Source: Bispira polyomma
Lineage: Eukaryota
NCBI GenBank assembly: GCA_965649765.1
Contig: OZ287752.1
Coordinates: 46,128,001 to 46,192,000, forward strand
DNA length: 64,000 nt
Direction of reading: 5' to 3'
Shown here: one piece after another, positions 42,189 to 49,100 of the stretch
Position numbering within the stretch: position 1 is the stretch's first letter
How the letters are laid out: every line of letters begins with the position of its first letter
Position numbers and translations under genes: made by a program
The notes under the pieces: generated by a model
The model's input: only the letters and a program-made list of their open reading frames with translations
Database searches by the model: none
Told to the model about the DNA's origin: nothing

Positions 42189-42925
42189 TCACACAAATAC
42201 ATTAATTCCAGTAGGGGTAAGGGTTGGTAAGGCCCATATATAGTACAGTTCCTGGCGTCTGCGTCAATCTGTACTATTTGCCTTATTATCCAAACCTAAC
42301 CAATGGACAATACGGAACTCCATATTTTTAGCAGTGTTATTTCTGACTGAAGTGCCTTGACACTGGATGATTGTAATTTGGGATTGTGAACACTTCTTAC
42401 GTGTTCATACTTCCTTTGTCTAAATGGCCTTTTGGTTTCCCCTATGTATTGTAATCCACATTGATTACTGTTGATCATGTAAATCAGATTATTTAATTCA
42501 CATGTGAGACGGGGTTTTGGTGAGATATTTATACACTTGTAAACCTTTTTTTGTATGAAAACTGGTGAACTGATCCAGTTTTTTAAGTTTGAGGCAGTAT
42601 GTGCACTTGTCTAATCTGGTACAGACAGGTGGGAGATCATTTAATGACTTTTCACAACTATCTGCAGGGTACAGGATTTTGGCAGAGGTAAGTTTATCTC
42701 TGAGGTTAGGTAGCCTCTTAAACCCAATGATAGGTTTTTTATTGAATATTTTCTTTAGGTCATCTGTGTGTTGGATAATATTCCAATTATGTTTAATGAG
42801 TCCTTTAATGTCTGGGTTCATAGGGTTGTATTCAGTTACTAAAACTGGAGGGTCATTTTGCTTTTTTTTGTTTACTGCAAGTAATTGTGCTTGAGTGAAT
42901 TTGTTAGCTTTACTGAAGTGACCCT
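42189..42925 (-). pseudogene. Penelope-like element (Neptune-type), 3' part: thumb, Cys linker, GIY-YIG endonuclease
   Basis: GHFSKANKF..VTEYNP..NLRDKL, CTRLDKCTYC linker, NLIYMI..CGLQYIGETKR, E..YIW.L.TL.P.GIN; frameshifted. Confidence 0.9.
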
Positions 42926-43320
42926 AGATTGAATGCTTGCGTTATGACAAGCATCAGGTGTCAGTTTCCCCAAGTTGGGCTAATTAAAAGCCACTCATTA
43001 GGCCACCACCAGTGGTCCAGAATTTCCCGCCAAAAAGGGGTTACCTGCCCAAGAATAAACAAGCTTACCCTCATTCTGGGAACAAACATTGAACTGGCAA
43101 CAGCTAAAAAAGGACTAAGTTTTTTTTGGGACGCCATTTTAAATTTTACATACAACCAAGGATTTTTACACATAATTATATAACTACAAGATTTTAACAC
43201 AAGACATTCCATGTACAAATTCAAGTGGTTTTAAAAGAAAGTTATATAACAATTGGTGGTTAGTGAATAGTGAGGTGGTGTGCTGTAATAAGTGCAAGTC
43301 ACAGCTCGTGGGAGTTAGTT

Positions 43321-44538
43321 ATGGGGCCCAAGCAGACCGGTAGGCAGCACAATACCAGGAGTAAGAACCGAGAGGAGTGTTACAAGTGCAAGTTCAGTCA
43401 TCGATTGCCAGTTGGGGAGCTCTGCCGCAGAGAGGGACCCCCTGACCAGACCCTGTCGTCCTCTGGGTCGGACAACCCGAATCAGTCAAACGCACCGGGA
43501 ACGTCTAGCCAGACACAGAAACTACAGGAACATCGCGATTCCACAGCTGAGGGGATGGACGCGTCGCAGAATCGGTCAGTTAAAGCAAAGAAAAAACGTG
43601 TCGGGAATGCAGAAGTGGTGGCCAAATTGGATTTGTTTATGAACAAATTCACGCAGTTGGAAGAGCGGGTAACTCGACAGGAAGAACGCCGGGACAGCGA
43701 GTTGTCCCTCTCAACCAGGCCTTCAGCGCATAGCTCGCCAAAACGGAAAACTACAGGTGAAAGGGCTGAGGGGCGAGGGCAGTCTGATAAGGCTACCAAG
43801 CTGCCTTCCTTGGATTTTCTGCGGGGGAACACCACCATCCAAGACGAGGTCAACAGGAGGTTACGACAGTACCAGGATGTATCCAGAGACGACCTCACAG
43901 GTATTTTCATTAACAAAAAATCGCTTAAATCGGGGAGATTACGTGTAGGGGACCAAAAGGTCAAGGTTTCTGTGCCATGGCCACACGAGTACTGTATGCT
44001 CAACGAACATATGAAAATGCCTACCTATGAAGACTTAACGCTATGCCAGTGGGTACAGGGTTTCGCGCGTTGTGTATTAGAGGAAGCCGATGAGGAAGTG
44101 AGAAAGAACATGCTGCAGTACCAGTATTTACTGATGCAGGACGCAATCGATCTGTCCTGGGCTACGGCCAAGAGAGCACATGTAGCAGTGCTGTCTGAAA
44201 TAGAGAGGGGTAACGCGACGTGGGAAGATGTCGGAGAAATTGATCGCATACGTCAACGGTTCACACAAAGAACCCTGAAAGGGGCTGGCTCGTCCACTTA
44301 CAACGGCTCGACTAAGGAACAAGCTCAGAACAGTAAGGTAACTGTATGTCCTAAGTATTCAAAAGGTGTGTGTAGATTCGAAGGAGACCACTTCGAAGGG
44401 GGTAAAATGCTTAAGCACTCTTGTAGCTATTGCTACAAAGCCGTTCACAAGAACTATGACCATCCTGAGATAAAATGTAACAGGAAAGTAAAAGAAAGCG
44501 GTTCAAAGGGCACCGACAAGGCCGAACCGCGGGTTTAG
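43321..44538 (+). CDS. Gag-like ORF1 of the YR retrotransposon (405 aa from the first ATG)
   Basis: N-terminal CYKCKFSH-x7-C; LKSGR and WPHEY..YEDLT..QWVQGF core; C-terminal CPKYSKGVC-x5-H and HSCSYC-x8-HPEIKC fingers. Confidence 0.88.
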   Translation: MGPKQTGRQHNTRSKNREECYKCKFSHRLPVGELCRREGPPDQTLSSSGSDNPNQSNAPGTSSQTQKLQEHRDSTAEGMDASQNRSVKAKKKRVGNAEVVAKLDLFMNKFTQLEERVTRQEERRDSELSLSTRPSAHSSPKRKTTGERAEGRGQSDKATKLPSLDFLRGNTTIQDEVNRRLRQYQDVSRDDLTGIFINKKSLKSGRLRVGDQKVKVSVPWPHEYCMLNEHMKMPTYEDLTLCQWVQGFARCVLEEADEEVRKNMLQYQYLLMQDAIDLSWATAKRAHVAVLSEIERGNATWEDVGEIDRIRQRFTQRTLKGAGSSTYNGSTKEQAQNSKVTVCPKYSKGVCRFEGDHFEGGKMLKHSCSYCYKAVHKNYDHPEIKCNRKVKESGSKGTDKAEPRV

Positions 44539-44713
44539 TGTAACTAGGGCTCACTCTCACAGTATCACCAGTGCTCGCTTACCAAGCAATCATTCCCAGA
44601 CAAAGGGGGGTATTGTAACGAATAACGACATCTGGAAAAGTGGGTTTTGGCAGAGCCAGCATTTAGGCTCTTGTAGCTGTCAATGGTGTATAAAAGATAA
44701 GGTAAATTATGTA

Positions 44714-47029
44714 TTGCAGGGAATTGATACTGTGAGTAGGGGCGCCCCGCTGCTTAGCTTCACTACTGAATATAATAGGCATAAGGTTCAATGTAGGCGG
44801 GCAAATACAACGTTATTAAACAGTAACTGCACCAGTGTTTACAATGGTTCTGAGATTAATGTATTTTCCATGGTTAGTACCAGCATAGACTATACTGATA
44901 GTGTTTCCTCATACCAGTGTTGGGAGGTAAATAAGGACAGCTGTGTTGATAAATATAGTCAGTTTAAGGGATGGGTCAAGGACGACTTGGCCCCAGGGCT
45001 AGACAGTGTAAGGGTCCATGATATAGGGCATACAGGGAGTCTCATGTTCAATGCAGATTTCGACATGTCAAATCTAAACAGTGAAATAGGAAACACCCAA
45101 GCATATTCTAGTAATTGTGAGGTAGGTAACGAGTCAATTAATGTCAGCACGGCCATAAAGCAGGGGCAATTTGGGGATAACCGTAGAATTAACCACGTCA
45201 GTGTGCCCCCAAATGGCAGCCAATTAAGCCAGTATCAAAGCCTAGTGGGGGAAATTTCCTTACAAATAAAGGGGGGAAACCTTCAGGAATGGCTCAGGGG
45301 ATTTATTCCTATTCAACCAGGTCCCTTTGTACAAATTAATGTCCATAGGGAGGGGGGTGAATTACAAAGTAAGGACATGCAACAATGGGTTGGGGAGGCA
45401 CACACGTTAGTCAAACACAAAGGCGTGCCTAATTACAAGGGGGCTAGAATAATGGTTCCCGCCCAATTGAACATTACTGCTTGGCGTGCTTATTTAAAGG
45501 ACTATGACCTTTCAATTGTTTGTGAGTATTTACAATATGGGTTTCCCTTAGCGCTTGATTATAGTACTTTTCAGTACAACTCACGGGTAGATAACCACTC
45601 GTCCGCAGTGGCATATCCAATGGACGTAGACAAGTATTTTAAAACAGAAATTAGTTACAAGGCAATGGTGGGGCCTTTAAGAACTAGTCCTTTTGAAAAG
45701 TTACATGTGTCACCCTTAATGTCTAGGCCCAAGCCAAATGGTAGTAGAAGAATAATTGTGGACCTCTCATGGCCACGTGGTAACAGTGTAAACTCATGCA
45801 TACCTCGGAATTGCTTTGATAATATTGAATATCAGCTTAAGTACCCAACCATGGACAACATAGTGGAAAAGATAGCCAGGCTAGGCCCACAGTGTTTAAT
45901 TTATAAAATAGACCTTCAAAGGGCCTATAGAAATTTAAGGACCGATCCTTTAGATTATCCTGTACTTGGTCTTAACTGGCAAAGTAAGTTATATGTAGAT
46001 ATATCGGTACCATTTGGCCTTTCCTCAGGCGCATGCGCGTGCCAAATGATGACAGATTGCATAACTTACCTCATGCACACTAATAATTACTGGGTATGTT
46101 CTTACCTGGATGATTGCGTCGGAATTGCGCCTCCTGGCAAGGCTAGCCTGGCTTTCAAAACACTGTATAATTTAATACAAAAACTCGGCCTACCAATTAA
46201 TCAAGACAAAGTGGATACTCCCACAAGTGAATTAGTTTGTTTAGGCATTCAAATAAATGCACACACGGGGCGGCTTACAATACCTATAGACAAGTTAATG
46301 GAGGTCAAACACTTGTGTACACAATGGAAGACTAGAACAAAGGCCACCCGTAAGGGATTACAAAGGCTTTTGGGAAAACTCCTTTACATTCACTGGTGTG
46401 TAAAACCGGCTAGGTTGTTTGTCAACAGGATACTAGGGGTACTTAGGGGAATCCCCCCATGCACAACTGTGTCATTGGATAACGAGTTCTACAAGGATAT
46501 TAACTGGTTCTGTGAATTCTTGGAAGATTTTAATGGGGTTACAGAAATACATCAAATTAATGGCATAATCAATCAAGTATATGTAGATGCATCCTTAAGT
46601 AGCTTGGGGGCCTATTGGGACGAAAAAGTTTACTCAGTACATATACCTCAGCACTATAAAGACAACCTCACCATTGTTCATTTTGAGATGGTAAACATAA
46701 TTGTGGCATTTCAGCTATGGGGACCCAAATGGGCCAATCAAAAAATTAGTGTCCACTGCGACAATTTAGCTGTAGTGCACATACTTAACAGATTTAGATG
46801 CAGAGACTCTTTCCTCAATGCGTGTGCACGCACCTTATGGCTGTTGCAAGCCACAAACAATATTGACATGTCGGTACAACACGTTAGGGGCATTGATAAT
46901 ACCTACGCTGATTTATTGTCACGGTGGGAGCACTTTAAGAATACAAACAAGTCTGATGTAGCTTATTTACATACCTGTACATGGCATGAAGTAGATCCAA
47001 CATGGCTCGTACCTAATTTTAATATTTAA
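44714..47029 (+). CDS. Reverse transcriptase-RNase H (frame open from 44492, first ATG at 44870)
   Basis: RRIIVDLS, KIDLQRAYR, VPFGL, YLDD, LGI; RNase H YVDAS, IVHFEM, HCDN, NTYADLLSR. No methyltransferase-like domain follows. Confidence 0.95.
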   Translation: MQGIDTVSRGAPLLSFTTEYNRHKVQCRRANTTLLNSNCTSVYNGSEINVFSMVSTSIDYTDSVSSYQCWEVNKDSCVDKYSQFKGWVKDDLAPGLDSVRVHDIGHTGSLMFNADFDMSNLNSEIGNTQAYSSNCEVGNESINVSTAIKQGQFGDNRRINHVSVPPNGSQLSQYQSLVGEISLQIKGGNLQEWLRGFIPIQPGPFVQINVHREGGELQSKDMQQWVGEAHTLVKHKGVPNYKGARIMVPAQLNITAWRAYLKDYDLSIVCEYLQYGFPLALDYSTFQYNSRVDNHSSAVAYPMDVDKYFKTEISYKAMVGPLRTSPFEKLHVSPLMSRPKPNGSRRIIVDLSWPRGNSVNSCIPRNCFDNIEYQLKYPTMDNIVEKIARLGPQCLIYKIDLQRAYRNLRTDPLDYPVLGLNWQSKLYVDISVPFGLSSGACACQMMTDCITYLMHTNNYWVCSYLDDCVGIAPPGKASLAFKTLYNLIQKLGLPINQDKVDTPTSELVCLGIQINAHTGRLTIPIDKLMEVKHLCTQWKTRTKATRKGLQRLLGKLLYIHWCVKPARLFVNRILGVLRGIPPCTTVSLDNEFYKDINWFCEFLEDFNGVTEIHQINGIINQVYVDASLSSLGAYWDEKVYSVHIPQHYKDNLTIVHFEMVNIIVAFQLWGPKWANQKISVHCDNLAVVHILNRFRCRDSFLNACARTLWLLQATNNIDMSVQHVRGIDNTYADLLSRWEHFKNTNKSDVAYLHTCTWHEVDPTWLVPNFNI

Positions 47030-47039
47030 TTATTTGTAG

Positions 47040-48016
47040 GTCACCCTCTGATAACTGGCTTGCTTCGAGATGTCAATACAAGGGTGTCCAAAGGATTCAG
47101 ACCCCGCACTTCTGCAGCCTATCAGGCTAAGTTCAGGCTGTACATAGCCTTTCTAGTGTATTTAAGGGTTAAGTCTCACACTCACCTTAATTCAGTTCTG
47201 CTTTTCCTGGAGTTCTTGGCTCAGCAGGGCCATAAAGCTACCACTATTACAGGGTACCTCACAGTATTAAAACATTTCTTCCAAATGTATGACCTCCCAG
47301 CCAGTGCCTTGTATCATAAAAAGGTAGCTCTGGTCATAAAAGCAGTAGCAAATAACACTCCACTTACATACAAGATCAAAGGGATTTTCTCCACCCATAC
47401 CCTCCAACAGTTAGTTGCCTTCGCAACTGGGTTTCCTGGGGTGAGGCAGTACAAGGCAATCTTTTTGCTGGCATTTTTTGGCTTTTACAGGTTGGCCACT
47501 TTAGTACCCAATACTGCAGCTCAATTTCAACCATCACGGTTCCCAACAGAGAGTGACGTCATTTGGGGGGCTCCTGGGGCGCACATCCTCACCAAATGTG
47601 CAAAAAATATGCAAAAATCCGGGCAGCTACAAGTGATGCAGGTTCCTAGGCTTAAAAACTCACCCATCTGCCCCGTTAGGGCCTTAAAGCACATAGTTCC
47701 CAAACAAACCTCCAATAAGATTCCATTATTTAAATACTTACACAAAGGCGCAACTGTGGTCATAACCTCCTATCAGGTTAGAAAAGTCCTCGCTTCACTT
47801 CTCACTAGGCTAGGCCTCCCTCCAGCCGAATTGGGGTTCCATGCACTACGCCGTTCGGGGGCCTCATGGGCTTTTGACCATAATGTAGAACTAGACCATA
47901 TAAAGGTCCATGGGGGATGGCGCTCTGATGCGATTTGGCGCTATCTCATCAAAACACCCGTGGCTGCAAGTAAAGTTGCCACCACATTCACACAACACCT
48001 CACACCTCAATCTTAA
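47040..48016 (+). CDS. Tyrosine recombinase (no ATG near the ORF start; probably a spliced exon)
   Basis: FFGFYR, KN, CPVRAL, FHALRRSGA, GGWRS and WRY give the catalytic set R-K-H-R-W-Y; TTTGTAG acceptor at 47033-47039. Confidence 0.93.
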
Positions 48017-48437
48017 TACCCCTACTTATTGGCTTGGTTATTTCAGTATATACATAGATAAGTAAACCTACAACATTAGTGTAAACAGTTAAGTAGTAGA
48101 GTAAATAACAAATTAGTAGGTTAACCTTAAAGCTCAACTTAAGCTTAAGATAACCCTAACTCATAGTGTAAGGTCACCTTAAAGTCACAGCGTAGTGGCC
48201 CTTTATGTTAACCTTAACTCAAGCTAGGGACACCAGTTTACCATATAAGGTCACCATAAAGTCACCAGTAAAAGCGCGGGCTAGTGCGTTGCCATGGTTA
48301 AACTTCACTCTAGTTAAGGACACCTTTGGTTAGCCTTAAGGTCACCTTAAAGTCACAAGTTAAGGCCTTGGCTACAGTTTAAGGTGACCTTATGTCAGTA
48401 GATTAGTTTTAACCCTGTATATGTTATGTGTGTAATT

Positions 48438-48443
48438 AATAAA
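48438..48443 (+). terminator. Putative polyadenylation signal of the YR element
   Basis: AATAAA followed by GT-rich TTTGTTGTT about 20 nt downstream. Confidence 0.5.
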
Positions 48444-48546
48444 GCCAAAATATGTGATAAATTTGTTGTTACTCTGCGTTATGTCCACAAACCTTTCGCA
48501 TGACTAAGATCACCTGATCACTTACCTCACAGCTTGGGGAAACTGA

Positions 48547-49100
48547 TGAGTGATTTAATGGGGTAACCATGAGCAAGGTAGTACTCAGTGAGTTTCTTGG
48601 CATTGCTGGTGAAATCCTCATTTAGTGTGCATATGCACCTGAGTCTGAGGTATTGCCCATAGGGACCTTTATCCAAAACGCTTTTTGGGTGTGCTGAGGT
48701 GTGGTGTCGATACAGGTGAGTATCAGTGGGTTTGTTATACAGAGTAGTGATGAGCTCTCTTTGTGGATTAAAATAGACTGTTGTGTCTAAAAAATCTATA
48801 TGGGTGCTGTTATATTCATATGTGAATTTAATGGTTTGGTGAATGTTATTCAGGTAATTCACAAAATCCATTAACGCATTCTCACCATGAGTCCAGATGA
48901 TAAACATGTCATCAATAAATCTTTTCCACACTAATGGTTTTAATTGGTAGCCTTTTAGTGCTTTGGTTTCAAATCTGTCCATGAAAAGATTGGCATAGTT
49001 GGGTGCAAGTGATGTGCCCATAGCTGTACCTCCTATTTGGATATAGTGGTCGCCATTGAATTGGAAGTTCATACTGTGAAGAACTAATTTGAGTAGGTCC
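48547..49100 (-). pseudogene. Penelope-like element, RT part (5'-truncated)
   Basis: GTAMGTSLAPNYANLFM, WKRFIDD, IKFT, FLD, LYNKPTD, SAHP, GYP; continues at 42925. Confidence 0.93.

Follow-up and report, generated by a model that had tools for sequence, protein, structure and literature searches.

A retrotransposon of the Ngaro type, which encodes a tyrosine recombinase (YR), is present at positions 42925–48545 (+ strand) of a 64,000-nucleotide (nt) stretch of the genome of Bispira polyomma (GCA_965649765.1, contig OZ287752.1, positions 46,128,001–46,192,000 of the forward strand). This whole stretch is referred to below as the window, and its coordinates are used throughout unless another locus is named. 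Our results indicate that this copy is probably a tail-less by-product of a family whose propagating members carry a tail, and that a hairpin which can form where the right end of the element meets its left end probably serves as the mark for cutting and joining. As judged from the sequences of related copies, the window copy is a recurrent by-product of a Ngaro-type family, in which the open reading frames (ORFs) are flanked by a single repeat A on the left and a single repeat B on the right (A-ORFs-B) and the tail A2-spacer-B2 is missing. The element adds a new member to the Ngaro-like group and does not constitute a third terminal architecture. It differs from the published descriptions that we examined in the presence of a conserved spacer between A2 and B2, in the predominance of recurrent tail-less copies and in the covarying hairpin at the junction of B and A. 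The manner in which YR retrotransposons restore and join their ends, and in which the recombinase recognizes them, is still largely a model, and DIRS-1's internal complementary region (ICR) is the only element of this kind on which experimental tests have been made (PMC7192593). A short hairpin of conserved shape, in which the terminus of the element lies at a fixed place, provides a concrete candidate for a recombination or priming site.

The limits of the element were set by alignment of at least 20 copies from the same genome, which extend from TAAAT-TGAATGC... through ...GGGGAAACTG, and the site that it occupies is found empty in six intact copies of the interrupted target. An earlier prediction made from the window alone (the original prediction) had recognized the element, and in this it was right, but the ends that it gave (42921 and 48550) are not those shared by the copies. 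The target is a Penelope-like reverse transcriptase (RT) ORF, the downstream half of which lies at 42498–42924 and the upstream half at 48546–49072 (both on the − strand), as established by sequence match and by comparison with the empty site; it belongs to a large young family with at least 40 copies at 91–96% identity. The empty site in the six uninterrupted Penelope copies reads gtgaccc-c-tgagtgat, and hence the insertion took place without target duplication. A duplication of the target, which the original prediction had listed as a point to be checked, is ruled out by this comparison. The target is biased among the different copies: 13 of 18 have A at position −4 and likewise 13 of 18 have T at −2, a Y occupies −1 in 17 of 18, and a W is present at +1 in 15 of 16. 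The insertions are precise, without duplication, and occurred in loosely similar sites of the form A-N-T-Y|W, a weak pattern that resembles ACTG|T.

The relationship of the window copy to the other members of its family is evident from the arrangement of the two repeats. Repeat A (A1; 189 nt, 42925–43113, +) is followed by the coding part and by repeat B (515 nt, 48031–48545, +), of which only B1 is present here; in the long-form sisters, repeat A recurs as A2 directly after B1. At eight independent loci in this genome, the element has the long form A1-ORFs-B1|A2-spacer-B2 with a spacer of about 490 nt, and these loci comprise subfamilies that are 98%, 97%, 82%, and 72–76% identical to the window copy. 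Within the long forms, A1 and A2 are 98.9–100% identical and B1 and B2 about 97.5%. The exact junction GGGGAAACTG|TAAATTGAATGC occurs nine times in the genome, always in the order int-B1|A2-spacer, and neither a permuted order nor a full tandem was observed among these nine junctions. The original prediction had held that the terminal architecture of this element fits neither known class, while naming conventional split repeats in other copies as the finding that would speak against this claim; the eight sister loci carry precisely such repeats in the Ngaro-type order A1-int-B1|A2-spacer-B2. The distinct circularization scheme that it had proposed is likewise not supported, as the sister copies carry split direct repeats. 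The window copy itself was correctly described as lacking both split direct repeats and a long inverted terminal repeat (ITR): no duplicate of A or B was found within 42700–48800, Penelope sequence follows directly after B, and the sole terminal inverted repeat is a 17-nt pair.

The spacer is a regular part of the long form. Its identity between subfamilies is 81% where that of the coding part is 82%, and 95% where that of the coding part is 98%. As the spacer diverges in step with the coding part, it has been inherited together with the element. The possibility that the tail is a separately integrated mini-element was rejected on the grounds of this co-divergence, the constant order int-B|A-spacer, and the lack of full tandem dimers. 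The textbook arrangement B1A2B2 is thus simplified for these families, in which a conserved spacer lies between A2 and B2. Across the subfamilies, the sequence between A2 and B2 (L002:7319–7810; also loci L007, L026, and L028) is as conserved as the coding region; a GC-box-like and a TATA-like run are present in it, together with a block of GC-rich sequence about 100 nt in length. A spacer segment of about 100 nt (positions 297–398) also matches at least 20 other loci in the genome at about 78–80% identity. A search of the tail region against Rfam gave only sub-threshold matches of microRNA-like shape.

Short copies are in the majority in this family, with 14 of the 21 aligned copies being short (about 2:1 over the long ones), and the genome contains 67 A motifs and 34 B-end motifs but only nine exact junctions. 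In a maximum-likelihood tree of about 21 copies, the short and long forms were interleaved, seven changes of form being needed, which is the same number as for shuffled labels. In this tree the sister of the window copy is a long copy, one long copy is nested in a group of short ones, and no clade consisting only of short copies and having a real stem was present. The terminal branches of the short and long forms are of similar length (median 0.009 for both, p = 0.97), and the youngest copies, with terminal branches of 0.003, include short ones. The interleaving in the tree, together with the co-divergence of the spacer, points to a tail-carrying lineage as the one that propagates. From these comparisons of copies we conclude that short forms appear to arise repeatedly from a tail-carrying lineage, at or soon after insertion. 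The tail may be lost by a template switch of the RT between B2 and B1 during reverse transcription, by excision of A2-spacer-B2 by the element's own YR, or by a homologous B1 × B2 deletion soon after insertion; these three routes yield the same product. For annotation, the abundance of short copies means that consensus builders will often record the tail-less form and miss the split repeats.

The second part of our interpretation concerns the ends of the element. The terminal 16 nt of the element, ending in ..ACTG (R; 48530–48545, +), would form the 5′ arm of an outer stem once B is joined to A, and an inverted copy of them, 15 of 16 positions being complementary, lies inside the left end (R′; 42962–42977, +, nt 38–53 of the left end, one mismatch). 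Inverted matches of R and R′ numbered two in the window against 0.04 expected, and none of 100 shuffles reached two. The left end begins with a 5-nt junction core (42925–42929, +), the 5′ side of an internal loop, which is TAAAT in 17 of 18 copies and reads TAGAT in the window copy as a result of one substitution. It is followed by an inner stem-loop (42930–42956, +), where TGAATGC (42930–42936) pairs with GCATCA (42951–42956), the inner helix being 94% paired with little variation. The 3′ side of the internal loop is formed by an opposing core GGTGT (42957–42961, +), which is not complementary to TAAAT. The original prediction had noted a miniature ICR, i.e., a complement of the junction inside the left end, and this feature is real, conserved, and covaries across families; the ICR-like element exists alongside the split repeats and does not replace them. 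Two details of that prediction fared differently. The 8-mer CACCTGAT (48511–48518) is indeed complementary to 42953–42960, but the pairing of CACCTGAT with ATCAGGTG is near chance and is not cleanly conserved, other subfamilies having an extra base, and it was set aside as evidence. The AGAT near the left end, which had been likened to a variable coupling sequence of the Tn916 type, is part of the 5-nt core, which is fixed within the family and never occurs at the right end.

The conservation of this structure was examined in B|A junctions from 12 related families of this genome, which were identified by their approximate agreement with the junction pattern. Across these families, the proximal arms GGGGAAACTG and TGAATGC are conserved, and the 5-nt core varies by family (TAAAT, TGAAT, TGTAT, TAAGT, TTAGT, or TAATT). 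In the distal part of the outer stem, changes are seen on both sides, as in CATCAAT/ATTGATG, GGGCTGGT/ACCAGCCC, and GAGACTG/CAGTCTC. In the fixed alignment 86% of the cells are paired, compared with 32–50% when the partners are slid, and double-sided changes are present in nine of the 16 outer-stem pairs; a pairing or covariation score as high as that observed was reached by none of 500 shuffles. The folds have z-scores of −3 to −8 in 14 of 16 junctions tested, and in all 17 of 17 junctions the fold of the sense strand is better than that of the antisense strand. We also examined another assembly (ENA ERZ22147071; loci L056–L063), which is the source of all seven YR homologues that were looked up (31–56% identical to ORF3 of the window copy). 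It contains at least five distinct Ngaro families with split repeats, in which the A2-B2 spacers are 49–769 nt long, and four of five families have the same hairpin architecture in wholly unrelated sequence. The shared design consists of an outer stem of 14–16 bp, formed by the end of B and a segment 35–55 nt into A, an internal loop of about 5 × 5 nt, and an inner stem-loop. In the displayed folds, the outer stem has the terminus of the element at its inner end, and the join is usually ..ACTG|T.

Based upon these observations, we favor a reading in which the end of B, on meeting the start of A, either at B1|A2 or at the end-to-end junction of a circular or panhandle intermediate, would form an imperfect hairpin, a conserved cis element that every copy carries. 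Either this structure or the inverted repeat encoding it would show the YR the point of cutting and joining (..ACTG|T), and in a single-stranded intermediate it may additionally hold the two ends together, much as the ICR of DIRS1. The split repeats would stay the likely template for the restoration of ends that are truncated in the transcript. A more specific and, in our view, unlikely extension, suggested by analogy, is that the hairpin could be used in folded single-stranded form for integration, as a eukaryotic counterpart of integron attC and CTX phage attP(+), which are folded single-strand YR substrates of bacteria. The YR would then exchange a single strand at ..ACTG|T, where the outer stem borders on the unpaired 5-nt bubble. 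The unmixed core, the spacing of about 40 bp between the arms, and the single permutation speak against a staggered exchange of the classical kind on a duplex circle, and these features fit a single-strand exchange on a folded junction; neither a core mixed with target sequence nor a core copied to the right end was found among 18 copies. If true, such an exchange would explain the precise, duplication-free insertions and the family-specific invariant cores, as well as the use of only the junction of the cDNA ends and not of the identical internal B1|A2, and it would tie in with the single-stranded nature of DIRS-1 cDNA.

A number of observations weigh against the favored reading of the family and its hairpin. 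The first base after the element in the window (48546) is A, where the six intact Penelope copies have C. Among 16 copies, ..ACTG is followed by A in nine, by T in six and by C in none; the A at 48546 could reflect either a target preference for W or a base changed during integration. In three of the eight long forms (L008, L016, and L031) B2 is truncated, at differing points (about positions 240, 350, and 457 of 515), and hence the junction site is not in every case the place where the right end of a long form is made. A nested insertion was rejected as the origin of these truncations, as no remainder of B2 is present within 8 kb and there is no poly(A) at the break. Two junctions of this genome (L051 and L053) and one family of ERZ22147071 (L056) lack a convincing fold, the sense strand is favored by a small margin (about 1.6 kcal/mol under DNA parameters), and relationship among the families with the hairpin is frequent. 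Covariation would also be expected if a single protein binds both arms in duplex DNA, and hence it is no proof of folding. Lastly, the number of copies in the tree is small.

The last but one of these points leads to the explanation that the inverted repeat acts in duplex DNA only, R, R′, and the inner arms being sites for the recombinase or for Gag on a double-stranded circle without any folding. The cores of known YR sites span 6–8 bp, and classical YR sites are themselves inverted repeats; in the present case the arms are about 40 bp apart and the R-core-L sequence itself is not symmetric. Although both strands fold almost equally well, as this explanation would have it, the G-T pairs favor the sense strand at 17 of 17 junctions. 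A staggered 5-nt exchange also predicts target homology or mixed cores, and neither is seen: 17 of 18 copies start with TAAAT at the left, and it is never present at the right end. Further, although two identical junctions would be available in the circle of a long form, the same single permutation is observed at all eight of eight loci. A double-stranded circle is presupposed in the established models of both DIRS and Ngaro elements (PMC7192593), and some weight must be given to this explanation, though on balance we consider it rather improbable. A different role for the same structure, and a serious rival to the reading that we favor, is that of an RNA signal, in which a read-through transcript would carry, at B1|A2, a bulged stem-loop as a signal for the initiation of reverse transcription or for packaging, and minus-strand DNA would begin exactly at the end of B. 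Hepadnaviruses possess such a bulged stem-loop, epsilon, as their initiation and packaging signal. The better folding of the sense strand at every one of the 17 junctions and the coincidence of the terminus with the boundary of the loop are in accord with this role, and a start at the end of B would yield a unit-length A-ORFs-B cDNA, which is the commonest genomic form; moreover, no primer is known for the DIRS-type RT, and for DIRS-1 a hairpin at the 3′ end has been put forward (PMC7192593). The origin of new long forms is left unaccounted for in this way, and an AATAAA is present 102 nt before the end of B, so that many transcripts may end before they reach the junction; we regard the RNA signal as an unlikely explanation.

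The short form, too, can be accounted for in other ways. The missing tail could be an old deletion between B1 and B2 after insertion in this one copy, similar to the formation of a solo long terminal repeat and uninformative on mechanism. The size of B (515 nt) and the distance of only about 680 nt between its two copies are favorable to such an event, solo AB repeats are formed by recombination in the Ngaro elements of Cafeteria (PMC8547959), and one solo A-spacer-B unit was found in this genome. However, two thirds of the copies are short, including the youngest ones (terminal branches 0.003), and as short copies are no older than long ones, the loss must in most events have occurred at or very soon after insertion; an old, isolated deletion is thus not a probable explanation, although it retains some plausibility. 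At the other extreme, the short form A-ORFs-B might be self-sufficient, with the miniature ICR replacing split repeats or the ITR/ICR combination, which would constitute a third terminal architecture. The majority of short copies (about 14 versus 7 among those aligned, and 67 A motifs versus 9 exact junctions), their exact ends, open ORFs and youth equal to that of the long forms, and the conserved pairing of R with R′ are all consistent with this. Against it, every short copy is a terminal leaf among long ones, long copies are nested within short groups, and the co-divergence of the spacer with the coding region requires that the propagating lineage carry the tail. In addition, the hairpin is found equally in long forms and in normal split-repeat families, and its loop cores are non-complementary, which leaves no simple templating splint like the ICR of DIRS1. 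A self-sufficient short form is therefore the explanation to which we give the least credence.

The placement of this element within the Ngaro-like group, as a tail-carrying family, was assessed by comparison with the known systems. Ngaro-like YR retrotransposons belong to the DIRS order (Goodwin and Poulter 2004, as summarized in PMC8547959, PMC4157794, and 10.1101/2021.08.05.455354). The present family resembles the Ngaro elements in the order of its gag-like, RT, and YR genes on one strand, in the combination of an RT with a YR, in split direct repeats, which the window copy lacks and the family possesses, in insertion without target duplication, and in the common occurrence of copies without repeats. 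Ngaro elements have the structure A1-[ORFs]-B1A2B2 and form solo AB repeats by recombination (PMC8547959), the split-repeat architecture is also described in PMC4157794 and 10.1101/2021.08.05.455354, and Ngaro copies lacking their split repeats are known (10.1101/2021.08.05.455354). The differences are that in this family the A2-B2 spacer is conserved and about 490 nt in length (49–769 nt in the five families of the other assembly), that tail-less copies are in the majority, and that a covarying B|A hairpin is present in which the terminus lies at a fixed place; no mention of a junction hairpin in Ngaro elements was found in the literature on YR retrotransposons that we examined. PAT-like elements combine split direct repeats, which the family also has, with a methyltransferase domain, which is absent after the RT in Ngaro-like elements. 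No methyltransferase match was obtained for ORF2, in which only 257 residues follow the RT, although the DIRS methyltransferase may not be modeled in Pfam.

In DIRS-1, the ICR is essential for retrotransposition and the cDNA is single-stranded (PMC7192593). Our element shares with the DIRS1-like elements an internal sequence that is complementary to both termini, so that a single strand could place the ends side by side. However, it has no long ITRs; its complement measures 16 + 6 nt compared with 88 nt in DIRS1 and lies 26–53 nt from the left end instead of adjoining the right repeat, as an ICR does; and between the two halves of the complement lies a 5-nt core without a match to the junction, and hence they cannot template the join. 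The likeness to integron attC and CTX phage attP(+) consists in an imperfect hairpin with two duplex arms and an unpaired central bubble, in a join at the boundary of arm and bubble, in the retention of shape over sequence, and in products that fit a single strand exchange (precise, without duplication, and without a mixed core). The present case differs in that it concerns a eukaryotic retroelement whose arms are not recognizably symmetric, and the likeness is one of shape only, known here from sequence. With Tn916-type systems the element has in common a YR enzyme and an assumed circular intermediate, but its core is fixed within the family (17 of 18 copies) and varies only between families, and no target-derived heteroduplex footprint was seen at its ends.

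The coding part of the window copy consists of three open frames on the + strand (43270–44538, 44714–47029, and 47060–48016), as the original prediction had stated. ORF1 (43270–44538) is a gag-like frame of 422 codons in which the first ATG is codon 18; it has Cys/His-rich motifs in its C-terminal part, and no Pfam family was matched by it. ORF2 (44714–47029) encodes the RT, with RVT_1 at residues 372–514 (E = 1e-8, above the Pfam cut-off) followed by a C-terminal part of 257 residues. No other Pfam match was obtained for ORF2 even at E = 5; an RNase H domain was not directly detected in it, and the corresponding ORFs at loci of the other genome match RVT_3. ORF3 (47060–48016) encodes the YR, which gave weak matches to both integrase domains in Pfam. 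In an alignment of ORF3 with 14 homologues, the catalytic residues of tyrosine recombinases (R144, K182, H261, R264, W287, and Y295) are invariant or nearly so, and PF00589 is present in several homologues. Sequence searches of PDB were uninformative, whether made with ORF2, with ORF3 or with a YR profile of 15 members. ORF2 and ORF3 are in one frame with a single stop between them (47027–47059), and there is no ATG near the start of ORF3, which indicates that the recombinase is made by read-through, splicing, or another non-standard route.

Some further features of the repeats and of individual copies were also observed. In repeat B, the AATAAA of which lies at 48438–48443, a 21-mer motif of the TAAGGTCACC type occurs in three direct copies and in one inverted copy (48169–48392). 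This motif resembles a nuclear-receptor half-site, and the array may be a regulatory module. One copy of the long form occurs as two nearly identical sequences in opposite orientations, separated by about 19 kb (C11:49576294–49582981 and C11:49601927–49608602), and this pair looks like a local inverted segmental duplication. The solo A-spacer-B unit (L032) is located at C2:89981265–89982471 and has the exact ends and the flank pattern of full elements; it is either a product of recombination between A1 and A2 or a mobilized mini-circle.

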